A DNA stretch of 36,572 bases from Intoshia linei (GCA_001642005.1 LWCA01000254.1:1-36572), one strand, 5' to 3'; shown: positions 1,290 to 35,153, numbered from the stretch's first letter. Program-made: numbers and translations. The notes: generated by a model from the sequence alone, not told the origin.

Positions 1290-4200
1290 ATGCGTGAACC
1301 GGAAAAAATAAATAAGGTGACATTATTTGACGTGGTCCTTACAGTATGTTCATTAATTTCATTTTTGGCTGATATAATTTCAGGTAAAAGATCAATTTAT
1401 TGATATAATTATTTAGATTTGGTATTGGCCATTTACTATTATTATCTGAATCACAAAATATGGTTCACTTTGACATTAATCTTCATAATTGTGCCGGCTA
1501 TCTTTATGCAGATTTTTAGCTATATTTGGTATAAACACGACAAATCATATGTCAAACTAGAAAATATGGATAGTTCAGTGAGTTTAACTTATAGAATCAA
1601 ACACAATTGGATTTATTTGATAAGTCACATTTTGCTACTTCAACCGATAGAAAGGTAATATATAATAAGGTCAGCAACCTATTCTAGTGAGTGGACTGAA
1701 TCGATAATTTAATGACGTCGACACTTAAAAAGGTTATCTACCTAATGTGCTTATTCGTATATCTTTTTACACAAACACCATACCTTTGAGTACTGAGACA
1801 TACTTAATTTAATTAATTTTTAAGAATACCGTAAATTTATAATTTTTTTCTAAAAGGTTATGCTTTATAATTTCTTTTTTTATGTTTTGACCTGTTAAAA
1901 TATTATCCAATAAATAGAGTGAATTATGACAAATAACCACTTTTTTCTTGAATATTAATAATCCTCTTATTTGGGTACCTGAATCGGTCACAGCAAATTA
2001 TTAATTTTTTTAGTTCCTCTATCTCTACTTTTTATTCAATTTTTGATTAATACACTGTTATTTAATACGTTTTATTTTATCTGACATCGAGTCTTCTGAT
2101 CTGTAAACAGTGTAATTATTTTTTTATTCTGATTAGCATGTCCTTTATTTTGAATAATTTTCAAATGGTAATACGTATTAGATCAGTGGTTGCCAATTGG
2201 GGTCTGTGAAATTAAAATAAAATATAGAAAAATTTTATCAACTTTTATTTATTTTTAATATTTATTATATAGTTGCCAGATGTTGGTAATTTAGCCCAAA
2301 ATCCAGACGACCGCTACATTATTATTTCAAAAATTCCCCTTTAATCCCATCATTTGAAACTTCAGGAAAAATCAACTTTTACCGATATTTTTTTGAAAAA
2401 TCCGATTTTACCAAATTTTATGAGAAAAGTCTACCCAAAAAAAATAACACTACAAAATAAAAATACAAATTTAAATGCTTAAAGGATATATCCTCTTGTT
2501 CCAATATTTTTTTTAAAAACACGATTTTACCAAATTTTAAGAGAAAAAACCTTTAAAATTTTTATAAATGTTTTATATTTCAGGTATTAGATGTATATGA
2601 ATTAAAAAGAGGTTGTTGTTTGCATCAAACATTCTCAATCCTTTTTCTCTGTGGACCCCTAAGATGATATTACAAAAAACCTGTGGACCCTCAAAAAAAT
2701 TAATAATAATTACAATTTTTAATGAATCATTACATTTGTGTGAAACGAATGATGGCCAAATGTTAAGGAGTAATCTAGTTTTTCGAGATGATAAAGTTGA
2801 TGAACTATCAATATTAAACAAATTTTTAAATTTTAATTCTAACATTATTATTCAATTTTACAATATATGCAGATAAGCAATCCTGTGAAGAAATTATGTC
2901 GATCCTAATCAATTTTAGTTTATTTGAATTAAATTTTTTCTAAAAATCACTAACATAAAGTTACTTTTTCATAGTTAACGTCATATTTTAAAATCGTAGT
3001 CTTTTTTTATAACTAAAGTCAGTTTTATTTGTTTACTTCTTTGAATAAACGACTTGATTATTTGAAAATATGACGTTAGTTAAGAAAAAATGACTATATA
3101 CTGAAAATATCTATAATATGTAATAAATGTGTATAATTTTTATGGACCCAAAAAAGTTCTGTGGACCCCGTTGAGAATGGCTGGTTTACATCAATAAAAA
3201 TTGTAGTTTTTATCAATTTATATCAGGGATGCCCAACCTGTCGATCGAAGTTGATTTTTTAGTCGATAGCATCAAAAAAAGGTTGGGCACCCCTGATATA
3301 CATTAATTACTAAATGAAAAACGTGTCTAGCCGTAGATTGCCAATCCTGATATAAATATAATAACTAGATATTTAAAGTCGATAAAGACATGTATAAAAG
3401 CCTATAAACAAGACGATCCAATTTTATGTAAAATATTCTTTCACCAATACAATGACATCTGTTTACTACGAATATTTGAAGCATTTCTTGAATCAAGTCC
3501 CCAAACCATTCTACAATTTTATATTATATTTTCTTCAGATTCAAACACATATTTAGCTTGTAAGTCGATTGTTTTAATTAATAATGTCTAGTTGTATCAA
3601 TTGTTGTATCTCTACTATCCATTGCCATTTCTGTGGCCGCATATCATCATTCGCTACGACAAAACTACGATTCAATGTACAGTACCCGTATACCATCTTT
3701 AATTTTCCACACGTTATGGCATTTCTGTATGGTTGGCTCACGAATCATCATGTATTCTATATTTGCAGTCAATTTTAGAAATTGGGTTTTTCTGTTAATA
3801 GGTAATAAAGTGTTTACACATATAATTTGTAAAATAGGAATTCGTTGGTTAGTCATGCAGATTTGGATTTTTATTGAAAAAACAGATTTTGGAAAGAGTT
3901 TGGCTGAAAAAGTATTGTTTGATTTCTGTGTATCGTGCATTTACGTATTCACATTTTTCAACGTTAGTGATGGTCCAACAAGATACAGGCTAACATTGTT
4001 TTATTTTATTGTTCTAATCGAAAACGTATTAGTTTGCATTGCCTTAACTTACTTTTATTACACTGATGTAATGCTAATTTATTGGACATACATTGTTTTT
4101 ATCTTTGCTTTGTATCTTATAGGTATTACTACTGTCAATATTATATTAAATTTTTAATTTAGGAATAGCGTTTATGCTTACTTATTATCATTGTTTTCAT

Positions 4201-7329: not shown

Positions 7330-9840
7330 ATGAAAAATGATTTTTTAAAGGTGAAGACTGAATCATGTATATAATTGAATTTAGACTATACTTACCGACG
7401 ACAACGTGTACGTCAAATGCATCAATCAAAAAAACCATTCTGTAATGACTGTGCCAGGGAGTTTATCTTTTTTAAAGGTAAATGATGTATTGTGCATAAT
7501 ATTTTACAATTTCAGTATGGAAGTAGATACAATATTGTATGGATATCGGAAAAGAACTTTAATAAACTTAAAGCAAAAGGTTCTGATCCAGTCAGCGCGG
7601 TTTTAGGTATTTTTATGAATAATAATCTAAATCAAAGTACCATTAAAATGCTTGTTTTTAGCTGAGCATTTAAAATTGACTTCTGTTGAAGCAACAGCTA
7701 TTCAAACCAACCCTGAAAATTTCAATAAGGACACATTTAATCAAATTATGGACATGTTTATTATTGATACCGATCTCATTGATTCGTATAGAATCAAAAA
7801 CGTTAGTATCATATTTTCTCTTCGTCCAGTGACAACATTTCCCTCTATATTTTTCAGCAGGTTGATTCAACTGCGAAATTTCATTGATGCCATGAAATCA
7901 AATTTCTCTATTGCACCATCAATGTGTAATAAAAATGTTTTCCAATTGAAATCTAAAGATGACTGTGAAATAATCAGTGCTTTCAACACCCTCAACCTTT
8001 TTGACGACGACAAAGAAATTGGAGTTGTTCAAAAATTTGTTAAAAATCCCAAAAAAACCGTATTAAATGAAATGTCTAAAATTACAGGATACATGTCATT
8101 TACCACTTCGGAGCGTAGCTCCAGTGCTCGAGAACCTAGCGAATACGCTTTTTACAGTCTTGATGCAGAAAATCTAGCAGATCAGGGAAACATTTGTTAT
8201 TATAATAACAGTGAAGACGATTACGATCATGTTTATCAAATACCTGAAAGAAAATGTTTACACCGAGAAAATTTTCTCAATACCGCTGTCTGGGAACAGT
8301 CTATGGAATCAAATGGATCGATAAACAATGACAACAAAAATAAAATCCTTGAAATAATTTTCAGAGGAGGTGTTCAACCGGAAATACGAAACGAAGTATG
8401 GAGTGTAATTATTATTTATTATTAAATTTTTATGTTACAATTAGTTTATACTGGGCATTTACGACTGGAATTCTACGTTTGACGAAAGACAACACATTAG
8501 AGCTAAAAATTCAGAATATTTTTTTAAGGCGCGACAGCAATGGAAAAGTATGGATCAAGAACAAATGAAAAGAAATTCATCTTTGCAAGCAGCCCATGAT
8601 TGTATTGTAAAAGATGTTAGAAGGTGTACAAATTTCCATATTTCTTAATTATAATAATTTAGAACAGATCGAGAATTACCTGAATTTGAGCAAGATGAAT
8701 CTCAATGTTTGAAAGATTTGTTTGATATTCTAATGACTCATACTATGGATAATTTTGATTTGGGTTATGTTCAAGGAATGAATGATATATGTGCTCCTTT
8801 ATTTAGAATAACCAATAATATTACAGATATTTATTGGCTATTTAAGAAAATTATGATCATTTTGGTAAGATTATTCATGTCAACTATATATTAGAACCTT
8901 CAAAGTATTTTTTTATAATGATTAATGATATATATTAAAGTTTACAATGTACATTGTACATTGAATAGAAATGAACTTACTATTTTGACTTGATTATAAT
9001 TTTATTTGATAATCAGAGGTTGCTTGTAATTATACTTTTTCTAAAAAATATTCTAAAGGAACCCAATTTTGTCAATATGAAGGAAAACATTGTAATACAG
9101 ATAAACAACGTCAACAAATTGCTTAGATTTATCGACTTAAAACTCTTTACAGCTTTAGGTAATTGTAAAATATTTTTATTTATGGTCTAAACCGGCGGAA
9201 CGATAATAAAGTATAAAATTTATTGCAGACTATTAATTTAATAATTACTGTGAAATTAATAGGTAACATTGAAAAAAATTTGATAAAAAACGTAACAAAT
9301 TGACTCCTAATTAGTAAAAATTTTGGGGAATTTGAGAAACTCTGGTCTAAACATTATATATTTCAAGCAAAGAAACAACTTTATAATAAAACTTTTTAAT
9401 AATAAATATTTTTCACTGGATCATGTATTAATATATAATTTAGACGCAATGTCTGAAAAGAACCATTTTTACTATTTCCAATGGATCCTACTTTTATTCA
9501 AACGTAGCTTTCCCATAAAACAAATCTATAATTTATGGGAAGTTTACTTTACCAACAAGCCTTGTAAAAATTACAACATAATAATGATTGTCGCTTTAAT
9601 GATTCACAACAGAAATAAAATTGTAGAAAAAAAGATGAAATTTTACGAATTATACAAGGTTTATATTAAGATTTTTATTTTAATTAATTTTAGTTGATTA
9701 AAACTTTTACTAAAGACATTTCAACATCGCAGTTATTAAGTTCATCAGAAGAAGTGTTTTTACAGATTGCAGGATGTCGAGATCTACCTAACAGCATTGA
9801 ACAAATGTTTTTTTCAGATTATAATGTTAATAAAATTTAA
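7330..9840 (+). CDS. TBC-domain Rab GTPase-activating protein, TBC1D15/TBC1D17-like
   Basis: IIFRGGVQPEIRNEVW, the arginine finger IVKDVRR/TDR (split by an intron), the glutamine finger DLGYVQGMNDI, and FQWILLLFKRSF...LWEV. About 10 exons with GT-AG introns. Confidence 0.88.
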
Positions 9841-10869
9841 AAATTACAACGTACCTATTTAATGTGTAATAAATCAGTAATATGGTCACTTTAGCCTTTA
9901 ACCAGAAGCAAATATTTTTTTAACAAATGATTTACAAAACTGAGAAGCTACGAAAGGTAACAGCAGATATAATCATAATCAATTAACAAAAATAGCATTG
10001 AACTTAAATTAATCTACAATATTAAAGTTACGTTTCTCATGAATATATAACACCGGACAACATTTTTACAGTTTTAAAAAAATTTATGCTAGGTTTTATT
10101 TTGAAGTGATAGACCGAATTGCAAAATGTATATTCTGAAAGATAGAGGGAAATTTGTATTATAGTTACTGTAATAATATCATTAATATTATTTTATGTAA
10201 AGGATTATTGCATATTTTATATCATTAAGTGTACTATTTTGAGTAACTAATATTTTTTAAATACATAATTAAAAATGGTGAATCTAATAAAACTAAAAAT
10301 TTCAATTATGAAATTATCTTTAAAAAAATCATAAGTTTTTTAAAGAATTTCTGGAATATTTTTTTACAATCTACACGAGAAGACACAAATATAATCTTAT
10401 GACACAAAATTAGAAATCTATCATAAATAATAATCATAATGCATGTTATACATTTTTTTAACTTTAACACGAAATGGTTCACATTTGATAGAGTAAGATT
10501 TTTTGATTTTATTAGACGTAAGTCACAAATTAGACAATAATTATTTGATTTTATACAATAATGATCATTCATTTAAAAGTGAATAGACTTTATATATTAG
10601 TTTAGTTGTATGTAACTACATAAATAACAGTTATTAATATTAATATTTAAATATTAATTAATTCTTTAACTACGAAATACATTTTTAAAATTTTTTCAGA
10701 AATGTAAAAATTATAATTCATAGTCCATATTATATTATTTTTAAACAGAAATTTTTTTCAGTGTTGTTTAGTGTAATAGTACCATCTAAGTCCTTATTAA
10801 TATGGAATTTCCACCATAGCAGCACTTGTTTTTAGCTCTATCAGAATAATTCTTTTTTTTTTAATTTTC

Positions 10870-11530: not shown

Positions 11531-14078
11531 ATGAATAATTTTAAATTAAATCAACCAAATTTGAAGAATCTGCGGACTATTTTTCTATATGACAGTTTAA
11601 CCAAATCAAAAATAGAATTTACAAATAAAAGTCCTCTTAAAATTTATTCCTGCGGACCCACGGTTTACGATAAATCTCATTTAGGGCATGCTTGGTATTT
11701 ATTAAGCATAAAATATAGGGGAAAATGTGTGATAATTTTAAATTCATTAATTTAGTACATATATTCGATTGGACATGATCCGAAGAATGCTAAAATTCAG
11801 TAATTTTAACAACATACTTTGCATGGGAATAACGGATATAGATGATAAAATTATAAATAAAGGAATAAAGGTTTCACCGAAAATAATCTAATTACCGTTT
11901 AGTTAAATAAACCTTCAATTAATATAGCTAACATCTACTTTAAAGAATTTATTCAAAATTTAAATGATTTGAACATTCACGTTGACAAATTTTGTAAGGT
12001 TTCAAATAATATTAACGAAATTATTAATTTTATCAAAATATTGATTAAAAAAAAAAGTGCATATGCAACAACTGTTGGAAATGTGTATTTCCATTCAGGT
12101 TGCATTTCTGCTAAAAAATTGTTTATGAATACTAAAAATGATGAATACACTTCAATAAAATCTGGTAATTATATTTACAATCTCTGTTATAAAAATTAGA
12201 CAGTGGTAAAGATAAATTAACTACATCTGATTTCGCATTGTGGAAAACAAGCAAAGAAGGTTGGGCCTCTCCATGGGGAATTGGAAGGCCCGGGTGGCAT
12301 ATTGAATGCTCTGCTATGGCTACTAATATTTTTGGCGATGAAATAGACATTCATTATGGAGGTGAAGATATAATGATTCCACACCATCAGAACGAAATTA
12401 TACAATCTGAATGTTTTCACAATTCCAAATGGGTCAATTGTTGGATTCATTCTGGTAATACCTTATATTTTAGTTTTTATAAACCTTTTTCGTAATTAGG
12501 TACTGTTCATGTAGAAAAATTAAATAATATTGAAAAAATGTCAAAAAGTTTGAACAATTACACTTCTATAGACCAATTTTTATCTAAACATCATGCCAAC
12601 GTTTTGCGAATGATTTGTTTTAGTAGAGATATTCGATCTAGTAATTCAATATTTTATAAATATTTATTGGCTAAGTGAGAATGTATATGTTTTGAAATTG
12701 ATAAAATAGAGGAAACTGAAATGGTTTAGAATTATAATGTAAATTATTTATTAATTCATTATATCCGCTATATTAGGATTTCTTAACCTTTTTAAATTTA
12801 GCACCCCAGTTAGCCAGATCAATTATTTCCAGCACCCTTGTAAAAAATAAATAATTGATACCTTAAAATTAAACGTAAAAATTCTATTATGTTGACATTT
12901 TTAAAAACCATCATATTAATATCTAACATAATCAATAAATGGTCAAAATCAAAATGGAAGCTGTATTTGATAAGATTTAAATTGACTTAAATTTAAATAT
13001 TCCACTTATTTGACCGACAAAGTCAAAAATTTAATTTTTTCATTTTTTATGGAAATAATTTTTCTAGTACCCTTGAAATTAATTCTAGCACCGATTAAGA
13101 AAATCTGATTTATATTATGAAACTATTATTATTTCAATATACACTGATATTTGTAAAACTAGAAATAAATTATAATGAAACAATTACCAATAATTCGATT
13201 AAACTTTTACAAAATTTTCAAAACTACTTTGATCACATGGACTATCTGATGAAAAAAGAAAACGTACAAGTCATTGATGAATCTAATTTTTTAAAAGTGT
13301 AATATTAATTTATTCACATAAATTTTATATTCATAACAGTGGTAAAGAATGATTTCCAAACTAAATTATACGTTTACTTTAAAATTTTCTTTCCATTCAA
13401 GTTGAGTGACTCAACCAATTTTTTAAATGTTTTTTGAATCGTATGGCTAAATTCAGTCAGTTTTATCAGATATTTGGCAAATTTTTAATTAATTTAGATA
13501 AAAAGGATTTCCCCGATTCTTTGTAGACATTCATGAAACTTATTTTAGATTAACAGTTCTCAATGAAAATATAGTTGAATCTATATCGGATAATTTTAAT
13601 GCAAAAAGAATTACGGATTCATTGTTTGAAGCCATACAAAAGATTCAAACTGAATGCCGAATAATACCAATTACTCCAAAAAAAAATAATAGATATATGC
13701 TATTGTACGCCAAAAATTGTATTCTTGATTATTTAGAAAACTTTGGATTTGATAAAAAACCAGTAATATTAATATAATCATGACTAATCTCTTAGTTCCA
13801 AATGAACCAACCACACATTTATTCGAAAGTTTCCACAAATGAAAATGACATGCTTGGCGATATAATATTAATGAGAAATGAGATACGTTCATTATCTAAA
13901 AAGGTTGATAAAGGTATTCAACTGAATTATAGAAAATTAGACGTTTCTAGATACATCAACTGAATTGTTTAAACTTTCCGATAAGATTCGAGAAATTTTA
14001 CACGATAAGTATTCCATAAATATGAAGGTATGAATAAAAATAAAAAAATTGTATAAATTTTAATTTAAGGACAAATAG
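11531..14078 (+). CDS. CARS2: Cysteinyl-tRNA synthetase, mitochondrial type (CARS2-like)
   Basis: [16 protein letters not shown] (HIGH motif), [40 protein letters not shown]...[14 protein letters not shown], and C-terminal SDKIRE...INMKDK*. MGITD and the lack of the cytosolic CARS1 insertions favour CARS2. Confidence 0.9.
12775..13107. mobile_element. hAT-like MITE in a CARS2 intron
   Basis: Ends taggatttcttaac / attaagaaaatctg are imperfect inverted repeats. A repeated agcaccc motif lies near both ends. Confidence 0.5.
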
Positions 14079-14095
14079 ACAACTATGGGATATAT

Positions 14096-16678
14096 TTATT
14101 TACAATCCAATAGAGACAAAACATTGATAGCACCTGCAAATTTATTTGTATTTGCGGATTCTTCCAAAATTATTTTATGTTTTAAAATTATTTTCTTCAC
14201 CTTTTTGTTATTATTCTTCATCAACCTAAACATAATTAAAAAAATATAAATGAAAAAATAGTTACAAGCTAATTATATGACATCCCCGATTAATTTTCAA
14301 CCATTCGGAAAAAATTTTATCGTCAATTAAAGCTTTGATAAAATTATCTAAAATTACGAATTAAATAATGCACATTAAATCTTACCATTTGATGTATCAC
14401 TGATAATTTTTTTAAGTAAAATATTTGCTGGGTCATGCTTTATGATTTGTGGATTTTCAGTTATCAAATTTGAAAATTTTTCAAATAATAGTTTCGACTC
14501 ATCTAAAATAAAATGACTAAGTAAAACTTATTCATATTAATTACCATTTTTAAGATCAATCAGAGCTGTAATAATAGGGTAATGGCTTTTTAATTCTACA
14601 AAGGTTGCTAAATTGTCTAGTACACATTGTAATATTGATTTTCCAAAAATATCGGCCAATTCTTGGCATTTTATGTTTCTATCCTTTTTACTAAAAAATA
14701 AAAAATACACAGCCATTGATAAAATGAATACCTATTAGCATAAGACGATTTTATTAATTCCAAAAGTTGAGGATTGATAAATTTTGGATTGCGTGGAGAC
14801 AAAATATAAGAAATAATACGTCGCCCATACTGAGAATCAAACAGTTTGTTTATGTCGTCGTTTATACTCTAAAAACTGTTTACAAATTCCTGTAACTACT
14901 GTAGATTGTTAAAATATAAAATGGCAAATGAAGAATTGGCAAAATTAGATTTACACTTTGACGATTTTAACCAAATAAAAATCTTGGAACCTAATATTCA
15001 AGAAAACGGAAACCAGTTATCAAACGCCTGTGATGAATTCATGAAAAGTTTGTTAAAATAGAGTTTATCATAAATAAATTCTAGATATTGAAGTGTTTAT
15101 GGAAATATCCAAACCAATCAAAGATTCCTACCATGATATGGTTAAAAATGTCGAGGAATGTAAAATGAATGTAAATATTTCATATAAACATTTTATTGAA
15201 ATCTAGGCCCTCTGTGCTAGAACCATTAACACCACCATGAATGAAAATTACAGCAAAGAAAGGGATTTAATGAATAAAATTAACCATAAAAATATGCTCA
15301 TAGAAAAGTAATTTTAAAGTAAAAGGATAAATTAATTAAGTATTTTAGATTAAAAACTGAATTGGCATCATATGCTCAACACGAAAGAAGCCAACAAAAA
15401 ATGATTGAACAGATTCGATTATTAAAATAAATATACTGGTGCTATTTGTTTTTTGATTAATGCAGTGTCATCTAATGCGTCCAGTATGCAGATAATTATA
15501 AGATAAGAGTCTTTTAGACAAATGTCAACAATTTTACTTTTCATTGATTTCACTATAATTTTTCTTTCCTAAAATTCCAAATGTAAATAGTAATTTACAA
15601 AACTAAATACCTTTGGTTTTGAATGCCAAAATATTTTCATAGCTATATAAATGCCATCATTGCTATTCAAAAAGGTTTCCAATTTGTCGCGTAACTTTTC
15701 GATAATTTCCTAAAATTATAATTATTCATAAAAATTAAAAATCTACCAATGTCAAGTTTTCATCGTCTTGAGATAGTAAATACTGTCTAAAAAGCTTGTG
15801 TATAAAAGACAGACCCAAAATATGATCATTGTCACTAAAAGCAACAAGTCTATCATGTAAATGTTTCAACAAAATTTCTTTGTATTCTTTATTTTCAATA
15901 ATCTCGCTGAAATTCTTTTTACAATCAGGCTAATTTTCAAATTAAATAATATAAATAAAAATAACATTGAATATTTTGTATCTTTTTCCGTAGAATTCTC
16001 CCAACATTAATTTTTTTTGATGACTATTTGTGTATTTGGTGTAAACAAACTCCAATAATTGTCGCGATATCTAAATCAATTACGAATACAAACCCATTTG
16101 GAAACCTTTGTTTTTATCAAATTTCTCATGTCTTTAGATAATTCGTTAATTAAATGATTCTTTTGACTCTTAGAACTAATCAATGATTATATTAAACCAA
16201 AAAGTAACATTACCCAGATTTAAACAATTGCCTTAAGAAATGTACGGCATATTTACATTTAGCTAAATAATTTATTTCGACTAAATTTACATTATAAAAA
16301 TTGTATAAAATTACCTTTAAGTTCATCAAATATTTCATCTTTAGTGTCAGTTTCACCATATTTCACAATAGATTCAATAACTCGACTCATATCGGGAGTA
16401 TAGATAATCTATACATTCAGTCAAATTGCTAACTATTTAAAAACCTTTGTAAGATTTCCCTTTAATAGTTCAGAAATTTCTTGGCACCATTTTACTTGAT
16501 TTGCCCTTGTTGTATCATGTCTAAACATTCAGTAAAATTACATTTTAGAAAAATATTACTTTCGCAAATTGTTCCATATTTTTTTAGCTTTTAGATTCAT
16601 GTCATAATTAGGTTTTTGTTGTTTATGCACTTTTTTACGCTCCTTTTTTGTCAATTTTGACCAAGTCACCGCAATTTC
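14096..16678 (-). CDS. PUM3: Pumilio homolog 3 / Puf6 / KIAA0020-like nucleolar RNA-binding protein (5'-most exon uncertain); not in the ORF track
   Basis: The spliced translation gives NYDMNLKAKKIWNNLRK, PDMSRVIESIVKYG, LAKCKYA, LMLGEFYG, ERKIIVKSMKSKI...ILDALDDTALIKKQI and SQYGRRIISYILSPRNP...SKKDRNIKCQEL, collinear with PUM3. Stop at 14096-14098. Confidence 0.85.
14921..15430 (+). CDS. IFT20: Intraflagellar transport protein 20, 131 aa; exons 14921-15047, 15085-15170, 15207-15307, 15349-15430; nested antisense in a PUM3 intron; not in the ORF track
   Basis: Spliced protein MANEELAKLDLHFDDFNQIKILEPNIQENGNQLSNACDEFMKNIEVF...VEECKMNALCART...MLIEKLKTELASYAQHERSQQKMIEQIRLLK*. It resembles IFT20 (GLHFDELNKLRVLDP, EKMKAIGARN) in motif and length. 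Three GT-AG introns of 37, 36 and 41 nt. Confidence 0.9.
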
Positions 16679-16910
16679 TAATGATATATCGTATAAATAC
16701 TATTTCACGAAAAATTTAATTTGTATATATTCAATTATTATTATCGCAAATTTGCATTCAAAATTTTGTCTATAAAATAAAACCATTGCAAATTTTCATT
16801 CAAATTTAAACCTGGTAAACATTCAGTTGAGCGACATAATAAAACATTTTGGTACTTAATCATATTATTTATTTTTTCACCCAAATTTTAAATATTTTAA
16901 AGATAATTTT

Positions 16911-17531
16911 GGGACAATTTTAATTTTACCAACCCTTATGAGATTACCAACTTTTACCAACCTTTAATGTAAAAATTCGATTTTAAAAGCCCTTTAGGGA
17001 AAATTCCAGTTTTACCAACCTTTATGGGAAAACCCACTTTTACTAACATTTTATGTGAAAAAGAAAATGCATACAGCGTAGTTGAAAAGCTGAATTTTAT
17101 AAAACAAACAAGCAAAAATAGAGGTAAACAGTGTATGATTCAAACAATTACGACTGACGAAGGTAAGGCATATCAAAAAACTATAGAAATCCTTAATAGT
17201 TCCACCATATGGTTAACTGTTGGTTTCACGTGAAAACTTTGATTGAATCTGATGCTTCCGCGATAACTTGTTTATCACTAATTTTTCTATTTGAGAACTT
17301 CATTTTGTTTTGTTTGTGATATTGAGTTTTTATGGGATACTCCGCAATTCTGTAAAACTGGATTTTACCCTTAAAGGTTGGTAAAACTGGAATTTTCTCT
17401 AAAGGGTTTTTAACACCGAATTTTTCCCTTAAAGGTTGGTAAAACTGGAATTTTCCCTAAAGGGTTTTTAAAAACAAATTTTTCCTTTTAGGGTTGGTAA
17501 AACTAAAATTTTTAGTAAAAATTAGACACCC
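16911..17531. mobile_element. Foldback-like non-autonomous element with long inverted arms built of ~29-nt tandem units
   Basis: The left arm 16920-17050 (ttttaccaaccttta...) is inverted relative to the right arm 17352-17520 (aaaggttggtaaaactggaattttccc). The right end reads ...ttagacaccc. Confidence 0.65.
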
Positions 17532-19354: not shown

Positions 19355-22300
19355 TTATTTAATATCACAAAGCAAGGCTACGCCTCGCAAAACCCAATGG
19401 TCTGATTCTTTAGAAGTTTTGAGTAAAAGGTTGAAAATATATTTGAGATCTGTCCGGCGTGGTTTTTTGTACACCGGGCATTCGTAGTAATTTGGAGGTC
19501 CCTTTTTGTTTGATGTATTGATAGCAAAAACATGAACTACTGGTAATTGTGTGTATAAAACTTTTGGTGGAGGTTCAACCAGTTTCATATTCCTGCGATC
19601 CCACCCTGCTCCATCAATAAACAAACCATAAATGTATACACCTAAAAAAATTCAATTATAAATATAACGTCTAATTTTTTATATTTTGTAAAATATTAAG
19701 TAAAATTTACCTTCTGATGGCGGATTATTAATATCTTCTTTTAATAATTTAGTAACTTCATTATCTAGTACGACTCCATCTAAAGACCAACCTTTATGAG
19801 CTCTGGTAATTTCTTGTTTTGTAGCCGTTAAGAAACCTTGAGGATTAAAAAATCCAGTCATCCAAAAAGCCGCTGGACGTTCCACAAATATCCATGAATA
19901 GAATTGAGCGTTTCTGTCCACTAGCTCCGTAAACCAAAAACCAAAAGTTGAACCATCCCAAGAAATTTTGGACCATGAAGCTGGAATTCGAGCGTCAAAC
20001 AAATTATCCAGTGCATCCATTAAATTTTCAGACATTATTATTGTACCATCAATGGCTAATTTTAAATCATTCAAAGTACTACGGACACTTTTTATAACTC
20101 TGTCCATTCTGTCAATTTCTTGACGTAAAAATATATTAAGAGGTTGGAGGTGTCCATATTTATGTAATCGTTCTTTGACCTAAAAATAAAAATTAATAAA
20201 ATGTTCTATTTATGATTGAAATTATTTACCATATGAAAAATGTAATCTTCGGGTAATTTTTCTAAAACATCACTAGCTAGTTGATACACGATTGATTCTC
20301 TTGTTTGACCTCCGCCACTAGCTGCATCTTTGGGTTGTATACTTTGTATAGTTTGCAACATGAGAGAGGTTGTATTAGTTTGATATCTAATAATTACATA
20401 AAAATTACGGACAAACGTACATTATCTTACGTTATGTCTGCATTGGAATGTAAACCAAATATTTCAGGATGATCTGATACCGGTAATTTTTCGATAGCAT
20501 TGTTATAATCATCTACAGATTTACATTTTGGAATGACATATCCTAAAATTTATATTGAATGACGACACCAAATTATTTTAATGATTAAAAAAAATTCATT
20601 TAATTCACTACATAGTAAAATTACCTTTATAGAAATTGAACGAGTCATTAAATATATTTTCCCCTAAAAAAAGAATACAAACTTGACAAATAAAATTACC
20701 TAGCCAAACTTTGCAATAAGTAATCAATAATCGTTTATCAAAATCGTCTGTAACTCTTCCTCCATATTGAACTTCAGATATCATGTATCGAACGGTATTC
20801 CACGAAACACCCTAAAACTAATTAACTTTTGATAAAATATATAACATACTTTGCTAATATCCATATCATCCAAGTGATTTTGAACAAATTGCAAGGATGC
20901 AGCTAAATCTGAAGTGTTAAATTCATACGGAATGTTCCATCCAATGGGACCAAACTTTCGACGTTCTTGCACAACCGTATGCAAAAAAGCGACAGCATAT
21001 AATAACGGTTTCCATTGTGGAACATTGATAATATCTAAATAAAGTATATTAAAATTACTGGTAAATCTACCCAATTGATCTTGACTAACTGTACCATATG
21101 TACGCCTAAGTCCTGCTTTCATACCACCTGGTGGTTCGGCAGTATATTTAATACCCATTTGTAATAAATTAATAGGAAAATCTGGATGTTCTTCGGTAGT
21201 CAGCCAACAACGAAAATTTGGCTTGGCATTTTCTACATTTGTCAAAACATCCATAAGTTCCTCCATATAGTCTAATCCCAAATGACAATTCTGTAACAGC
21301 ACCCAACCTCCGTCTGACATGGCATTGTTTATAACTCGTCTAGCATGTACTTCCTGGCCTTGGCCCATTGATATTGCTTCGAATGACTTATTTTGCAATT
21401 TCGCCAACCTTTCAATTGATTCTGTAGGATCGGATCCCATGGAAAGGAAACAAATTAAAGGAACGCTAGTGTTTGATTCGTCAACCAATTCTGACAAATT
21501 GAGAGCAACGCCTTCGACGAATTTCTGGCCTATTGTAGTCCCAATGTATTTTTTTGCCATTGGTATGCATCTGTCAGGACACCAACACCTAACCAATAAC
21601 AATTTATGAAACAATGACAAATGGTTATCATATCCATCAGGTAGAACGGTCGATTCAGGCGCATCACTATCGAACCAGTCTTTCCATGATTTATCATCAT
21701 TAGTGACTTGACTTAAAATTTGAGTAAATGTGGGTAAAGAACTGAGTTCTACCAAATTCAACCATACCACGTCCGATATCCATTTTTTGGGTTTAGCTTC
21801 AACAGAATTTAAATCCAATGCAGCACCTCCTTTTATGAAAATAGAAAATTCTTTTGAACTCACCAAACCTTTTTTCATCTCTAGTTTGAATGTAATTAAT
21901 ACTGTAGATAAAAATTTGTCCTTTTCGAAAAGGCTTCTAACAAGGTAACGCCAGGACTCATATGTCAATGTTTCAATTATGTTTGCTATTCTTTTGGAGT
22001 TTACAGGTGATTTAGTGGAAATGGCAATAGAAATATTAAATATACCCAAAAATTGTTTTAACGACGTCTGATACATATTATTGATCATTCCAATTTCGAC
22101 GATAAAAAAGTAAAGAATACTACCTCTAGTAGCGACTGAACGAAATTCCTCTCTAGCAGAATTTATTCGAATTTCTGTTTCTGCTGCAATAGATAATTTT
22201 TCATTAACTTCATTGGCCGTAATTTTCGTAGTTCGTAATACAGCGATTAAAGATTCGTCTTCTACAAGAGAACCTTCTGTAGAAGTCAACCTAAATAGCA

Positions 22301-25300
22301 AGTTGTCCTCAAGTTCCTTCATTTTTCTTTTATTCAGTGTTACTTCGTTTACCAGTTTGGTTCTCTCAGATTCCAATTCCTTTTTTTCTGTAAAAATGAC
22401 AATACTCAACAATTGGTCCTCCAACCCTTTCATAGTGACTGTGAAATCAATAATTGAAGTTCTAGCGCTGACTTCTGGTGAGTAGGAAGGATTTCCACGT
22501 TTTGTAGTAATGTAAAGTCGGAAATTTTTCATAACATCACACTCTTTGTCTCCAATTTTAACTTTGTAATTGCTGCCAGATTTTATAAAATTTTTTTCTA
22601 GTATGTTATCGAGAACAGGGTCCAATTCCTCTCCAACATCTTCAATGAGCAACGGTTTTCCCAATGAAAGACATTCTTCCAAATGGGTTCTGAAATATTT
22701 GTGGTTTAAATTAGTTAACTAAAATAAGGTAATTATTATCTATTCTTATATTGGTATATACTTGTAATTCATTATTTGATTCTCTATTCTTAATCCAAGA
22801 TTTGCCTTGACCTTGCGGGTCAATTAAAAGAGGATATCGTGTTGCACTAGTCACAATCAGTCCATTTTGGATTGAAAGCTCATCATTAGGTAGTCCTTCG
22901 ACATTCCATTCACCAATGGTGGGAGCATCCACTAACATGTCAACCACATTCAAATTCTATACAATTCAATTAAAATATTTTATTGATTTATAATTACGTC
23001 CGAAAAAGGAATAGATTTCATTGTCATTTCTCTACACCACTTGTCAATCATAGTAGATCTGTATTCTTGGTTAAACGGTCCAGCATATGACAAAAATCCG
23101 GTAGCAATAAGAACATCACCAACCAATTTATGTATTTGGGATTCAAATTGTTTACTAGATTCAGTCCAGCGTATTTTTTCACCCGATAAACCATCTATCA
23201 ATGCTGTCGCATTGGACATTTTTTTACGACAAGATTCGGCATCGTCAATGAGAGTCTACAAGTATTACAATAAATAATAGATTCATACCTGTTTCTCAGA
23301 CATTGCTTTGTCATACTTTGCTTGTACTTCATCCAATTGCTTTTGTTTATCATCAAGTTTCATTTGAGCCTCATTCAAATCAACCATGGCACTATTATAT
23401 TTAGCTTCTTGAATTGCCAAATTTGCCTAAAATGTTAGAAATGCTGAACAATTGTCTGAACCTTTAGTGGTAAAACTTCTCGGTTAACCATAAAAAAGTC
23501 AGCCATTGCTTTTGTCCAAGATAAAAGACCGGCAACATCTCCGCAGGCATTTTTGGCAGTGTTATAAGTATAATCTTCCTGGTTAATGTATGGTAATAGC
23601 AATTCCAATGTTTCAGAATTTATTGTATCCTAAATATATGTATTATAACTACACATACATTGTAAATGGGCGTCAACTTAAATCCAACCATTTTAACTAA
23701 AAATCAAAATTTTAGTTTTACCAACCCTTAAGGGAAAAATTCCATTTCACCTAATTGCAAACTAATCATAATTAAACTGATTATGAAACAAATAATACTT
23801 TTAAAACAAAATTAAAAATTTTTTTTCATTATGTATTTTTCTGTAATTGAACTATTTTATATTTGCTTATTAGATGTTTTTAGATGGTCTTCCTGTTTTT
23901 CTAAGTATTTTTAACGGCAAATCAATTACATCCAATATTTTTTTGTAGAATTTTAATTCTAATTTTAATCAAAATTGCATAAAGTAATTATTATCATATC
24001 AAAAATATTCTACTTTAAATAAATGTAATAATATAAAAAATAGTCATTTTTTAAGTTTGTAAATTCCAAAGAATAATTTGATTATTACTTTTCTACAGTT
24101 TTATAAATCCTTATTTATATAATATGCTACGCGATTTTTGTTTGTGTGAGTGTTCCACTTTATTTAAATAAATACCCGTCTTAGAATTTTATAAACTCCA
24201 CATTTAACTTACAGTTTTTTCCGGGAGTGTTCGAAAAATAAATTTCAACATCCCAAACTCACATCTTACGGGTCAAAAACCCCAATTGTCCTTTTTTTTG
24301 AAAATCAAACAAGTCGGAGAATTTAAAAAAATATATACGCTGATACGGATTTTAAAATCATAAACATTATCATAATTATTATCATAAATTTCAATTAAAA
24401 AAAATATATCTTCAGGGCCAAAACCCCAAATTACTCTTTTTTTTAAATGAAAACAGTCCTAAAATTTGAAAAAATTTACAGGTGGTACAGTTGTATCCTA
24501 TAACACAGACAAAAAATTGGGGGTTTGTAAAAGTAAATTTTTCTCAAGTGTTGTTAAAACTGAATTTTTCCTTTTAGCGTTGGTAAAACTAGATTTTTCC
24601 ATAAATAGTTTGTAAAAATAAGGTTTTCTTTAAAGGGTTGCTAAAATTGGAATTTTCACTTAAGGGTTTGTGAAAATGAATTTTCCCCTTAAAGGTTTGT
24701 AAAAGTGGATGTTTCCCGTAAAAATTAGTAAAATTGGAATTTTACCTAAAGGGTTGTTAAAACTACATTTTACTTGTTTGAGTTGGTAAAACTGGATTTT
24801 TCTCTAAAGGTTTGGTAATACTGATCTTTTCATTTTAGGGTTGATAAAAGTAGATTTTTAGTAAAAATGGTAGGGTTTAAAAATATTCTCATTGTAAATT
24901 ACTTTTGGAAAAGATAAAAGTCCTTGTAAAAAATTAGAAGAGCCTAATAGTTTCAAAGATTCTCCCCAAGAAGGTTTTAAATGATTTTTTTCCGTGTCAA
25001 TTGATACAGTATCCATTCTTTTTTGAAATAAAATTGATACACAGTCCATAATTTTCATTATCATAAATGGAGGTTTAGCCAATTTTCTCACTATTATGCA
25101 AAATTATGTTGTTACTAATTTAATCAACCTGTTGATATGTGCGCTGGCTTTATTGTCTGCAATGCCGCTTCAGCTTGCTCTAAAGCCGGTCTAGCTACTT
25201 CCAATTTTTTCTCTGCTATTACTTTATCCGTCTGTTTATGTATTTAAATATATTATAATAACATGGCATACCGATATTTCATCAACTAATGATTGAGCCT

Positions 25301-28300
25301 TGTTTTTTACTTTTTGCACTTGTGCTTTAACTTTTTCTGCAGCTTGAGCACTTACAGTAACCTATTATTATTAGTTATTATTTTATAAAAATAATTATCA
25401 TTATAATGATAACTATTTGAAACAACTCTAGTCTCTGTCGGCAAATTAGACTGAAACGTTATTTATAAAATGCAGAAAGTTAAAAATATAAATGAAATAA
25501 GTGTTAATTAATGTTTACATCTGCTAAGACCAAATCAGCATTTTTACTGGCAATGGCTAATTCTTTTTCCTTGATTACAAGATCTTTGGATAATTCGTTA
25601 ATTGAATCTGTGGCTTCCATTAATTTTTTTAAACCTAAAAAATTTCAATAAAATATTTTAAGACAATATAAATTTAAAAATATTCACAACTTTAAAGTTT
25701 TCTGTAAAACTATTTTCTTTATCTGTCAATTAAAAAATAAACTTATTGAATATTGAGGCTTACTGTATTGTTAGAAATAAATAAAATCAAATTTACCTGT
25801 GTACATTCTCTCAGCCAATATTCCTATTTCCTTGTATTTTAAAGAATAAATGGTTTTATATCCTTCCAAAAAAGATAAGTATGATTTAGGCGTTACATGG
25901 GTACGTCTTCTGAACCTTTCAAAGTAACTGGTACAAACTTGGGATACCATATCCTAGTAGAAATTATTTTTATAATTTACAAAATAATAAATAATTCTTT
26001 ATCATTAATTATAATTACGAATTATAATTTAATTTTATTTATTTTTTTGTATATAAATGATGATAAGAAACCTGAATATTTCCCATTGTTGTTAAAACCG
26101 CATCTTTAACAGTATCTGTGCATGATATTTCATATGAAGACAAAAAATGTTTAGACACAGCAATAAGGGCGTCTTTGGGCCACCGTTGAAACCAATTCAT
26201 GGTACATCCAGATATCAAACCTGGGAATTTGAGTGATCTGGTCAAGAATTTTTCACCTACCGGAGAAAAACACAAAACAACATGTAAGTTGTTTCTAACT
26301 CTGGACATATAATATCCGTATAAGTTTTCATTGGAGGGTGGTCTTCTAGGAAATTCCTTTTTCATGGGAACTATTAAATCTTGTAATATTTCATCCATTT
26401 CATCTCTTGCAAACAAATTAGACACCTACATATAAATCAAGTCAAAATATTCCAAATAAATAACCTCGCCAGATGATAATAAATTGTTCATGTATTCTAA
26501 AAATGATTCATCCTTTATTTCATTGTCTGTAAACAAGAAAGTCATTGGTTTTCCTTTTTGACCAGCCGATCGATACAAAACTTTCAAATCATCCATTAAA
26601 TTATTAACACCGTAGGTTCTACGTGATTAAAATAAAAATAAAACTATGAAGGTAAATTAAAACATTTAAAGTTAAATCTAAAAACTCAGTTAAGTATGTA
26701 TCAAGACGGTTCACTCTGTGATTACAAGGAAACAATTCTCTAATTTACAAACATTTATGATTATAGAATAAAATTATTAAAATTAGTTTTAATTTTGTAG
26801 TAATTTAATGATTAATATAATAAACACAATAAATATAATAATAATTATTATTTAATTTTTNATAAACACAATAAATATAATAATAATTATTATTTAATTT
26901 TTTCTGTACAACGAAAAAATAATTACATCAAAAAATAATGTATTTAAAAATTCAACTCAAAGCCCTTAAAAATTTCATTATACTTTTTAAAATAAATATT
27001 TTTTGGGTGCATTCTCCCACTAAAATTGGATTACGATATCATACCTTGACAATGTTATTTGGAATATATCGTATCCAGCAATAAAGGAAGCTAAACGAGA
27101 TAGAGATTGTTTGCCAGATCCACCCACTCCAACTAATAATGCATGGCCTTTAGATGTTCGAATAATTCTGGATATTTTTAACAAATTTGTCATTGCATCC
27201 TAATTATAATAATTATAAAATATTACTGTATTAGTTACTCTGAAAAAGACCATATCCATTTTTGCACCTCGAATACTTTCGTTATATAAACTTTGGAAAC
27301 TGTACAGTCTCTGTACCAATATTTCAAATGTCTCAACCATTTCGTATATTTTGGGAGCTTCAAAGTCAGCGTCGTCGCCTTCTTCTCCTATAAGTGATTA
27401 CAATAAAATGAAATTTTAAATTTAAATTGAATTATTTTACACCATGCAAATAAAAACGACAAAAAATAAATTATCATGCTATTACTTTTATCTTTAGGTA
27501 TTTCATCTACAAAAAGTTTAATGGATCCCAGATAAAAAATAATTATAATATACCAGTGACTTCTGGTGCATCACGCATAAAATCACAAAAATATGGCTCT
27601 TCGGCTAAATGTTGGCTTATATCATTTCCAATAACTTCACTGGCAACCTATTACAATAATAATATGAAACAATATATGTTTTTTCTAAAATTTGATAATT
27701 TTAATGACGCTTAATTCCCATTCTGTGTATTTATGTAATATTAAAAATATTTCGCAATAAAAATATTTACAAATAAATTAATTAATATATTAAATAAGTA
27801 TAATTATACTGTTGATTTTATTAATATTTTCTGATTATATATTATTATATAACTGTTGATAATTATTATAGTGATATTTTCCATTTTGATGAATTAATCC
27901 TATTGAATTGCTAATTTGCATGAAAAACTAATAATTATAAAATGATGAAACAACAAATCAAAGTTTTAGTTTTTTTTATATATTTTTTAAAAAAACATAA
28001 AACCCATTTATGTTTCGTCGATTTATTCAAAAACTACCTATAGATTTTTGTTTATAATTTTCAAATATAGTTCATTCTTAAAATCTGAAAATCTGAAAAT
28101 TCTCTTTCATATATTAATTTTGTCTGGTTATTGTCGACAAAAAGTTAGAAATTGTTTATTAGTGTAATTTAATTTTTTTCAATTTTGAAATTATTTTGTC
28201 ATTACACTGAACAAAATTCAAGAAACGATCTCACTAATAATATGACATGTTTTTATATATTTTGTAGTTTAAAAAATGTCAAAAATGTTTTTAAAATTAA

Positions 28301-31300
28301 TCGAGTAAGAGTATCTAGAGATATTTACATCATCAGGATTAACTGATATACCCAAAACTACAAGATGAAAAATATTAAAAAATGTTGTATATGAGATCTG
28401 TGTATATGAAATTTTTTAAATAAATTATTTTTGCTTTAAAATGCTTTAAAAATATAATATACAATGTGTATTATACATGTATAATATACATTAACATAAC
28501 ATCATTACACAAGTCATTAACAATTAAATTTAAGCAATTTGTTTAAACTAATTTATAATAATAAAAAAATTTATAAGGGAGGCACTAGAAAATAAAAAGT
28601 TGAGAAACACTGATATATAGGAATAAGTCCAAGATTAAAGTCATTTTTGATACTACTATTTGTTTTTATATTTGTGTACATTGTACACGACGCTATTGGA
28701 GAACAAATTATTTTCATTATTAGTTAACATGTGTGATTTACACTATTATATTATATTATTATATTATACATGTATATATATGATTGTATTATAAATTCTA
28801 TATATAATTTAAGTCATAATCAATTATTGTTAAAAAACCCAAAATAATTGTTATTTTACACGAAAATACACTAGATGTTTGCCCTTAATTTTTGAATACG
28901 TGCGACACCCCAATATGTATAATACCTGTTTGACACACTTTAACATCCATGTTTTATCAGAAAAATCAATAAATCTGTCTGCAATGACCCGTGTGCATTC
29001 ATGAAGCCACAAATTATACATTACACCCATTTCTGTCGCAACAATAGAACTAACTGTTAACATTCCTTGCCAGATTCGACTGAGATCACGCAAGTTGAAA
29101 ATGTAATGAAACTTTGCTGGAGTAGGAAGCATTTTTATTTTTATTTTTTGCCAGATTACTCTAGTAGCAACTACCAAATTTTCTATTGAATTACAGATTT
29201 CAGCGGAAAATCCTCTTTCCTTAAATTAAATTGTAATATTGCACAAAAAAACAAACCTCACAAAAGTACCCCTTCCCTATAGTATTGAAAATTTTATCAA
29301 TTGAAGAATCAGATGGAATGGTTGAGTTAAATATGCAGAAATGGCGCTTTAAGCGTTGAGGAATATCGTTACGACCTCCTCCAGGATGAATCATTGCAGC
29401 CATAAATTGCATATCGACAATATTTGTAAATTCACCAGGTTTTTCCAAACTATAAAATCCGTGCATTTCCATTGTTTGACGAACAATTTCATTAGTTATC
29501 TGAACGTAATAAAAGCAGTAAAAAACAAAAAAATTTTACAATAAAATACCTGATCTTCCCATTCATTGATAGTGGGCATATTGATATCGTCAATAAATAC
29601 AGTCATTTTTTTACCGGCAGGTGGGCCATAAGTTGAACCCATTCTTTTGTCAATGTAACTTTCGATAGTTTTCTAGTAAAAAATAATATTTATTGAATAA
29701 AATGAAAACGTTAAGTCGTTTTTACCTGAAACATGAATGGAGTAGAAGCACTCGAAAAGTTGAAAGATTTGTACATGTGCATTTCTGGGTCATAATTTTT
29801 ACAATACCCATGAATCATTACAGTTTTAGCGGTTCCTTGCTCTCCAATCAATAACAAACCTTTTCCTTGTTTAGCAATAATACCAATTAAATATTCTGTT
29901 CTGACGTTGTCCACGTTAGGAACCAATATAGAGGTATATTCTGGAATTGAGTCTTTAGGGTAAATGTAATTCGAAACCTAATTATTTAATAAGATTAAAA
30001 TTTTTATTCCAACTCTCTTGCTCCAATGTTCCCAATTCCCACTACTATCTACCGTATATTCGAACATGGATACACCATCATTACTTGGTGGTAGTTCCAA
30101 CATCCCGGGATTACTCCTGATAAAGTCTTCCATCTAATTTAATGATATAAATTATCAAAATATTAAACCTTTTTTCTATCGTCAAGTTCTAAAAGGGCAC
30201 CAAGTGACCACATCAATGAAAAAACAATACAACGATTCAAATAATTTGGTAATATATTTTTTTCTTCATCTCCTCCAGGTAAAATTCCTGATAAAACACT
30301 CAAAGCTTGTTTGATGTACATGCACTCTAATATCTAAAGCACAGTTAAACATAGACTTGACAAAACATACTTGCATTTTTGGAATCACAATCGTACTTAT
30401 AAATTCATACAACTCTTCCCAGATGGATTCAAATACAGAATATATCACTGCAACTTGACTAGCTGGCCTACCTATCAACCAACCTATTTTTGTGTAAATT
30501 AAATAACGTAAAACTTTTACCTTTCAATATAGGATCCCAGTTCATAATTGAACTGCTCATAAATACCATACCGTTCCTTGATACTGTTGCAGGTGACGCA
30601 TTGTCAATATTATGCACTTCAAATACAATTTTGCAGTTGGGAGCCATACTTATCCTGTCTCCATTTGCCAATGTTAGCGTCTTATTGTCATCAAGTACCT
30701 AAAACAGATATTTTTTGATAAAAAATTTTTACAGAGTTAAGATTCTCAATCCATATAGCGTCTACTGGTCCATCCAATATCAGCCAAATGTGTTCGCCCT
30801 TATGTTAAAATAAAAACTACGAATTAATGTTAATTCTTACTTTTTTAGCTTTATGGGTTCTTCTCCACATGGTAGAAAAAATACCGTCGGTCCAATCATT
30901 GGTGGCTACATCTAATCTTCCAAACATTTGAGGGGCTGTTATGGCTTTTGGATTCATTCGCATTTCTCGGTGTGGTTTTCCACAATCTCCCATAGCTTTT
31001 AGCAAAACCTAAAAAAATTAATTATTTACCAAACTTACCATTTTATATACACTTCATATAACTAATAAAAAAGAAAATACACTGATGCAATTTGTTTTTC
31101 CAGATCCTGATGGTCCCAAAGCCATCATGCCGTGTCTTACATTCTGGGTTTCATATAATTGAATTATCTTGAGCACCCATGGGTCATGATTAATCAAATT
31201 CAAATTTTTAATCTATTCAAAATAATTAAATGATATATAAATTAACCTGTGTATCTATTGCAGCTTCCATGTTAGGATATCCCATTTTCTCTAAAGTCAT

Positions 31301-34300: not shown

Positions 34301-35153
34301 AGATTCTTTCCATATTCTAGCATCCAATTTTTTGTTTCAGTTAACAGCCCACTTTTTAACAGGTCAGTATGTAACACAATTGGTCCTACTTTATAACATG
34401 AAATAATTTCGTTAATTTCTTCTTCCATATTCTAAAAAATGAATTATATAATTTTAAATTGTTAAAACCATGTAGTATCGAAATTTAGATTCAAACTCTG
34501 ATATTATGGGATTTTCTTTTGCAAATTCTATAACTTTTATCTTGGGTTCCTAAAAATAAATTACAAAACATGTCACAGCGTAAGCTTACCGATTCCCATA
34601 GTTCAGAATACTGGGAAAACATTTTCAATACATCGAGTATATCTGATTTAGCACTTGCAATAATGCTATTTAGTTGAATTACAATTTTTACAATATCTTT
34701 ATGCTCAGAAATAATTCGATATATTGTTTTAGCTCCTATAACCGATTTGCTATCATCTACATCCAAACTCATTACCCGGCTTGAATTTGTGGTCTTATAA
34801 TATACATTATAAACAATTGTAAACGATATTATTTTTAAATTTTAACTTACCGGTTCCAAAGAACTTTTAGTCTTGTTCTGTGTGTAAGTCGTTTCCCATT
34901 GTGGCATATTTTCCCATAGACGCAATATTATTTGTACACATTGATTCACACATGTTTGCATCTCTTCAATGCTTGGTTTAACAGTAATTACAGGTATTTC
35001 TACAAATTTTTAAAACATAATAATGGATCATGGTACCTAAAACTATGTTACTCTTAAAAAGTGGTTGAAATTCCAAATCATTAGGTTGATATGAAGAAAA
35101 CCTCTTTGAATTAATTAATCTTTGTTTAATTGAATCCAATGCTTTTCTGGTAC
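19355..35153 (-). CDS. DNAH5: Axonemal outer-arm dynein heavy chain, DNAH5/DNAH8 (gamma) type; N-terminal exons lie beyond the window
   Basis: [21 protein letters not shown]-loops GPAGTGKT (AAA1), GPSGSGKT (AAA2), GEQGTAKT (AAA3) and GVGGSGKQ (AAA4), CFDEFNR, stalk/MTBD region, and C-terminus [14 protein letters not shown]. Many short introns. Confidence 0.93.
23668..24870. mobile_element. Second foldback-like element of the same family, in a dynein intron, interrupted by Helitron-like copy C
   Basis: Left end gggcgtcaa...ttttagttttaccaacccttaagggaaaa; the right arm 24518-24865 has about 11-12 degenerate ~29-nt units in the opposite orientation. Confidence 0.65.
24108..24517 (+). mobile_element. 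Helitron-like repeat, copy C, truncated, inside a foldback-like element in a dynein intron
   Basis: Begins tccttatttatataatatgctacgcgatttttg, the reverse complement of the end of copy A. Homology continues to about 24517. Confidence 0.7.
26820..26902. other. Assembly gap (single N) flanked by an exact ~41-nt duplication
   Basis: ataaacacaataaatataataataattattatttaattttt occurs on both sides of the N at 26861. Confidence 0.8.

Follow-up and report, generated by a model that had tools for sequence, protein, structure and literature searches.

Genes located antisense within the introns of other genes are well described, and in Drosophila about 6% of the genes reside in introns (PMC3786989). In cases such as 2mit, which resides in tim2 (PMC3786989), a complete, independently promoted gene lies on the opposite strand inside a single intron of an unrelated host. 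Here we describe what appears to be an arrangement of the same kind in the orthonectid Intoshia linei, in which a gene for IFT20 is located within an intron of a gene for PUM3 and antisense to it. The pair is found on a contig of 36,572 nucleotides (GCA_001642005.1, LWCA01000254.1:1-36572), which was analyzed over its whole length and is referred to as the window in the following. On the evidence set out below, we consider it probable (roughly 0.85) that the two are truly a host gene and a gene nested in it, in an animal genome that has undergone compaction.

I. linei is reported to have short introns (median 57 bp) and to be placed on a long phylogenetic branch, and high rates of sequence evolution are reported for orthonectids in general (PMC6543705). 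The G+C content of the window is 26-34%, and its genes are multi-exon, with introns of about 35-45 nt. The original prediction, which was made from the sequence by itself, had PUM3 splicing from a donor at 15436 to an acceptor at 14869 between exons collinear with PUM3. It had the four coding exons of IFT20 occupying 510 of the intervening 568 nt, with 52 nt before the start codon, 6 nt after the stop codon and an AATAAA hexamer overlapping that stop. When both strands were read and the phases checked by script, every coordinate held, the IFT20 exons and flanks to the base, and the homology searches bore out the identity of both genes. These searches covered the I. linei assembly (41,603,068 bases in 3520 contigs), Pfam, solved structures and a library of representative proteins; all homology tests, for PUM3 and IFT20 alike, used single exons as queries.

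Host gene and nested gene

The predicted host is one single-copy PUM3 (Puf-A/Puf6, ribosome biogenesis) gene that continues across the gap in which IFT20 is located. On the minus strand, its model comprises 13 complete exons within 16520-14096, closed by a TAA stop codon at 14096-14098, and, upstream of these, the last part of another exon, which ends at 16560. Twelve of the mapped introns measure 34-42 nt, and the one between exons 9 and 10 measures 568 nt, about 14 times as much, an excess that is accounted for by the IFT20 gene. In the search of solved structures, the best matches of both flanking exons are to human PUM3 (4wzw_A and 4wzr_A), with PUM1 appearing only at E 0.98. Residues 1-41 of exon 9 align to residues 252-293 of the human chain and residues 7-41 of exon 10 to residues 303-337, which leaves nine query residues (3 + 6) and nine chain residues (294-302) unaligned between them. 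Since these gaps are equal, no coding sequence is missing at the junction, and the 568 nt must be removed.

The CPL domain, which begins in exon 10, provides further evidence for the identity of the host. Exon 10 matches it with 26 bits, above the Pfam cut-off of 22.3, and exon 11 with 19.3 bits; a six-frame search of the genome yields a match of 30.4 bits to profile positions 40-133 and one of 24 bits to positions 2-36. The CPL matches fall in exons 10-12 and represent the sole CPL locus in the assembly. In the N-terminal part, a PUF repeat (PF00806) is matched weakly by the exon at 16316-16408, whose 16.5 bits fall short of the cut-off (26.3), and the match of exon 9 to human PUM3 (E 0.004) lies in the repeat region of that protein.

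The nested gene, on the plus strand, is predicted to be the single-copy ortholog of IFT20, which serves as a small subunit in the intraflagellar-transport B complex. Its coding span of 510 nt from start to stop (14921-15430) takes up 90% of the host intron and holds 396 nt of coding sequence, i.e. 131 codons and a TAA, in four exons. The three introns between them measure 37, 36 and 41 nt, all with GT..AG boundaries and consistent phases. The start codon is fixed by an in-frame stop at 14870-14872 and by the absence of any ATG within 14869-14920.

Exon 1 matches the Pfam IFT20 family (PF14931, cut-off 27 bits) with 27.0 bits (E 5.5e-6) and is found at the same place by the six-frame genome search, with 27.1 bits. 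Exon 1 was also searched against the library of 1.84 billion representatives; the top of the resulting list consists of low-complexity repeat proteins, and the useful matches are short pieces of IFT20 exon 1 in other animals, one of which opened the way to full-length IFT20 proteins in many invertebrates. The reference alignment contains 14 full-length invertebrate IFT20 proteins of 132 aa, with a mean column identity of 88%. Against it, hhalign places exon 1 at columns 1-41 with a probability of 97.5% (E 5.7e-12). For exons 2 and 3, it yields weak, non-collinear local matches, which were replaced by an ungapped sliding-offset test against the same alignment, with 3000 shuffles per exon. Here, exon 1 has its best offset at column 1 and exon 2 at the collinear column 44, with a score reached by 0.07% of the shuffles. 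Exon 3, the weakest of the four, with 7 of its 33 residues agreeing with the consensus, has its second best offset at the collinear column (72/73), reached by 0.67% of the shuffles; this position is consistent with a one-residue deletion. Exon 4 fits best at column 107 and ends at the last residue of the homologs; none of the 3000 shuffles reaches its score, and hhalign aligns it locally to columns 117-129.

No other IFT20 was found in the assembly when a second copy was looked for, the remaining weak PF14931 match being the stem of a dynein heavy chain. IFT57 and IFT54, the direct partners that IFT20 proteins bind through their C-terminal coiled coil in the IFT-B complex, are encoded elsewhere in the genome, which indicates that the complex has been retained. 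In the IFT57 gene (contig C3043:43171-46084), two of the intervals between matching blocks of exons, of about 0.7 and 1.2 kb, far exceed the usual introns of 40 nt and could house further nested genes or repeats. The features of the pair are collected in Table 1.

Table 1. Features of the PUM3/IFT20 locus, with positions counted from the first nucleotide of the window
Feature	Position	Strand	Basis
PUM3/Puf-A/Puf6-type gene, mapped coding part	14096..16560	-	phase-consistent model, GT..AG introns
PUM3 exon 9 (ERKIIVK...IKKQIAP), upstream of host intron	15437..15568	-	match to human PUM3 4wzw_A, E 0.004
PUM3 exon 10 (SINDDINKLFDSQYGRR...), downstream of host intron, start of CPL domain	14732..14868	-	4wzw_A, E 2e-4; Pfam CPL
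Host intron, 568 nt, GTATAT..TTTTAG, phase 0	14869..15436	-	stops close the frame just inside both ends
Shared spacer, 52 nt, host acceptor to IFT20 ATG	14869..14920	.	sequence
IFT20 exon 1 (ATG, 42 codons + 1 base)	14921..15047	+	Pfam, hhalign
IFT20 exon 2	15085..15170	+	best ungapped offset collinear
IFT20 exon 3	15207..15307	+	collinear offset second best; weakest exon
IFT20 exon 4 with TAA stop	15349..15430	+	best ungapped offset collinear; hhalign local match
AATAAA overlapping the IFT20 TAA	15426..15431	+	sequence; putative poly(A) signal
T/GT-rich stretch, 7-25 nt past AATAAA	15438..15456	+	sequence; antisense to PUM3 codons (I)KKQIAP

Origin of the nesting and shared signals

To place the gene in an evolutionary context, its structure was compared to that of IFT20 in four spiralians, namely Owenia fusiformis (annelid), Lingula anatina (brachiopod), Crassostrea virginica (mollusc) and Tubulanus polymorphus (nemertean), as derived by tblastn of the four IFT20 proteins on their own loci. 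In all of them, IFT20 is built from four coding exons, with breaks at residues 42/43, 71/72 and 106. The Intoshia gene is interrupted at the same places, that is, one base past residue 42, between residues 71 and 72, and within the column 106 codon. The match was established at the residue level, and the phase-1 position of the first intron is implied by IFT20 exon-1 fragments from many animals, which read through into the intron at the same phase-1 point. The three shared positions argue for a vertically inherited ortholog and not a retrocopy; the original prediction had considered a recent retrocopy unlikely from the presence of introns, and the spiralian genes now put this on firmer ground.

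The same comparison bears on the origin of the arrangement. In each of the four spiralians, IFT20 is free-standing and inside no gene, and no PUF or CPL gene is found less than 10 kb from it; the nesting in Intoshia is therefore derived. As the gene has kept its introns and moved, we infer a rearrangement at the DNA level, not retroposition. In all four spiralians, IFT20 is located head-to-head with a BTB_2 gene; in three of these species, the two are about 390-430 nt apart, which suggests an old bidirectional pair. This partner is KCTD/TNFAIP1-like, with the pairing seen around 9570-10001 of the loci L003-L006. Lingula has a tandem duplicate of both genes together, with another BTB_2 at L004:16629-20829 and another IFT20 from 21216. 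Intoshia has four BTB_2 loci, all of them on contigs other than that of IFT20, so that a pair conserved in four spiralian phyla is broken in this species.

As little space is left around the nested gene, some of its signals may coincide with those of the host. Read on the minus strand, the 52-nt spacer comprises the branch-point/pyrimidine region of the PUM3 intron and its AG acceptor; read on the plus strand, it is all the DNA upstream of the IFT20 start codon that does not belong to a PUM3 exon, and it would have to serve IFT20 in that capacity. With these host signals also to be fitted into the spacer, the core promoter of IFT20 probably extends into exon 10. At the other end, 6 nt (15431-15436) separate the IFT20 stop codon from the host donor, and the AATAAA hexamer ends with the base that forms position +6 of the 5' splice site of PUM3 (15436-15431, minus strand). 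If this hexamer acts as a poly(A) signal, the poly(A) site, 10-30 nt further on, would fall at about 15441-15461, i.e. 5-25 nt inside PUM3 exon 9, and the T/GT-rich stretch listed in Table 1 would be in the right place for a downstream cleavage element. From this geometry, it is likely that the ends of the IFT20 transcript overlap PUM3 exons. The PUM3 stop codon, too, is located within overlapping AATAAA hexamers (AAATAAATAAAT, 14096-14101 of the window), and overlap of a poly(A) signal with a Lys-TAA stop may occur widely in a genome so rich in AT and not be special to IFT20.

Other candidate signals were considered and set aside. An RFX X-box, the promoter mark of ciliary genes, can be written into the spacer with two mismatches (14886-14899), but such matches occur at chance level, with 124 found in the window and 131 expected; likewise, none is present in the regions upstream of IFT20 in the four spiralians. 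The TAG at 14902-14904 might serve as an acceptor for a trans-spliced leader, which would replace a local promoter; we regard this as a distant prospect, and trans-splicing and operons are reported to be absent from annelids (PMC7854359). Rfam and tRNA scans of the window returned nothing, and hence the intron holds no snoRNA, while a scan for bacterial promoters and terminators was disregarded for this eukaryotic DNA.

These observations can be combined into a possible course of events. IFT20 would have reached the PUM3 intron by a rearrangement of DNA, keeping its three ancestral introns, which would since have shrunk to 36-41 nt. The same deletion-driven shrinkage that may have brought the other PUM3 introns to about 40 nt would have trimmed the host intron until it met the needs of the nested gene and the splice signals, deletion pressure coming to a halt where either of these would suffer. 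As a consequence, the core promoter or 5' leader of IFT20 would share DNA with the 3' splice-site region of PUM3, probably with exon 10. Each gene would retain a promoter of its own, and the PUM3 pre-mRNA, prior to removal of the intron, would contain the antisense of all of IFT20. The nearby DNA has not all been squeezed in this way, as about 2.5 kb with 29-nt repeats lie between PUM3 and the dynein gene described below.

Alternative explanations and genomic surroundings

Several points weigh against the interpretation of the locus as a PUM3 gene that hosts IFT20. The splice junction over the host intron, those within IFT20 and both ends of the IFT20 transcript are predictions from genomic DNA, and the PUM3 model is without a start codon, expected upstream of about 16600-16880, and without its first exon or exons, expected upstream of about 16560-16700. 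For IFT20, the Pfam score of exon 1 is exactly at the cut-off, a borderline value that is due to only one exon being scored at a time. Exons 2-4, taken singly, match nothing in Pfam or among solved structures, because these pieces are too short and divergent, and exon 1 retrieves from the solved structures no IFT20 but only the unrelated ORF12, at E 2. Furthermore, exon 1 is contained in none of the predicted proteins among the 1.84 billion representatives, and the model thus has no independent annotation behind it. The predicted product is identical to the consensus at 43 of 129 positions and keeps 25 of the 58 invariant columns. Finally, AATAAA is common in this AT-rich DNA, with 3.4 occurrences per kb on the strand in question, so that its overlap with the Lys-TAA stop is weak evidence by itself.

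Given such divergence, IFT20 might be a decaying or unexpressed relic, changed under relaxed constraint: its identity to a consensus conserved to about 88% is just 33%, 33 of the 58 invariant columns have changed, and exon 3 is barely recognizable. Yet the frame of 131 codons is intact over four exons, the six splice sites are canonical and at their ancestral positions, and start and stop are collinear with those of the homologs. The gene is also the sole copy in an assembly that has kept its partners IFT57 and IFT54, and orthonectids are reported to evolve fast in sequence in general (PMC6543705). We thus find a relic quite improbable and read the gene as a very fast-evolving ortholog. It is likewise conceivable that the host is not one gene but two independently expressed ones, one for the N-terminal half with the PUF repeats and one for the C-terminal half with the CPL domain, with IFT20 between them, and that there is no intron of 568 nt at all; its junction is deduced purely from DNA, and its length makes it an outlier among the introns of 34-42 nt in the same gene. 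Against this, there is no Met in exons 10-13 and a stop in frame immediately precedes exon 10, so that the C-terminal half is not translatable alone, while reading on past exon 9 leads to a stop after only four codons. The boundaries are GT..AG and in phase 0, the exons abut in the alignment to human PUM3, and the break would fall midway in a continuous repeat fold, all of which renders a split gene very unlikely. The chance that the assembly has misjoined IFT20 into the PUM3 locus appears negligible, fragmented as it is: a misjoin would not set a complete gene precisely within GT..AG boundaries of phase 0 while sparing the PUM3 protein any interruption, and the base composition is uniform across the region.

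A different question is whether the nesting itself is functional. It could be a selected regulatory device, in which transcription or the pairing of sense and antisense RNA inversely couples ciliogenesis, in free-swimming adults and larvae, to ribosome production in the growing plasmodium. The transcription units are fully antisense, the AATAAA touches the host 5' splice site, and transcriptional interference between host and nested genes has been documented elsewhere (PMC3192792). Nothing in the sequence requires or supports such a device, though; neutral rearrangement and intron shrinkage would yield the same arrangement, no conserved motif was found, and the X-box search stayed at chance level, which is why we give this idea little credence, no more than that of a relic. 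In a more far-reaching reading, intron shrinkage in orthonectids would have brought the pair to its physical limit: both the promoter and the poly(A) site of IFT20 would be located inside PUM3 coding exons, with single bases used for coding, for splicing and as transcription boundaries on both strands, and the antisense relation would make expression of the two genes mutually exclusive between the ciliated free-living stages and the growing plasmodium; this combination seems unlikely to us. The explanation we favor remains that of a host and a nested gene brought together by rearrangement and compaction.

The remainder of the window holds further genes. Roughly its right half is taken up by an axonemal-type dynein heavy-chain gene on the minus strand (19355-34428), whose exons match DHC_N2, AAA_6, AAA_8, AAA_9, Dynein_heavy, AAA_lid_11 and Dynein_C; its long exons coincide with a rise in G+C to 0.33-0.34 at 20-24 and 30-34 kb. 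A cysteinyl-tRNA synthetase gene on the plus strand (PF01406, three exons, 11531-12678 and beyond) converges on the 3' end of PUM3, and the two stop codons are about 130 nt apart if the open reading frame ending at 13963 represents its putative last exon. Exons of two further genes are found on the plus strand at 3633-4157 and 9323-9697, one gene being XK-related (PF09815, E 1e-30) and the other of the RabGAP-TBC type (PF00566). In addition, a repeat with units of 28-29 nt, resembling GGGTTGGTAAAACTGAATTTTTCCCTTAA, forms at least four dispersed tandem arrays, at 2366-2428, 16910-17061, 17352-17512 and 24521-24849, of which one is located just upstream of PUM3 and one, probably intronic, within the span of the dynein gene.

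Comparison with known systems

While the locus leaves current concepts unchanged, it is of interest in several respects. The sole IFT20 of this ciliated parasite seems to be absent from public protein sets, as its exon 1 matches no predicted protein of the library, and claims about the cilia gene content of orthonectids could be affected by nested, unannotated genes of this sort. With three introns in 510 nt, IFT20 represents a natural minimal gene and gives upper bounds for the sizes of promoter, leader and terminator in this lineage. It further shows that, in genome compaction, introns shrink no further than the genes nested in them allow.

Intoshia IFT20 resembles the spiralian genes in its four coding exons, its three intron positions, its length (131 vs 132 aa) and its start and end. 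Those genes, by contrast, span 1.0-9.8 kb, are free-standing and face BTB_2, whereas the Intoshia gene measures 510 nt, is about 33% identical to the consensus and is located inside PUM3. The host shares the CPL domain with human PUM3 (Puf-A, KIAA0020; 4WZR, 4WZW) and yeast Puf6, and its match to human PUM3 is collinear over the junction of exons 9 and 10; its sequence is highly divergent, and its PUF repeat match remains below the Pfam cut-off.

With regard to the arrangement, a parallel is found in the sense-antisense overlap that has been proposed to preserve introns in Giardia (PMC6545626); there, as here, a gene on the opposite strand would account for the persistence or the length of an intron in a reduced genome. 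In Giardia, this concerns the retention of the few introns that remain; the PUM3 intron, in contrast, would exist anyway, and only its length would be upheld by the nested gene. The Drosophila intronic genes are closer in kind, yet their classic cases involve introns of several kb with ample flanks, whereas the Intoshia intron measures 568 nt, is filled to 90% and has signals of the nested gene touching its splice sites. The nested antisense arrangement as such is thus already known, and what sets this locus apart is the degree of its compaction, with a nested gene that fills 90% of the intron and signals that abut those of the host.

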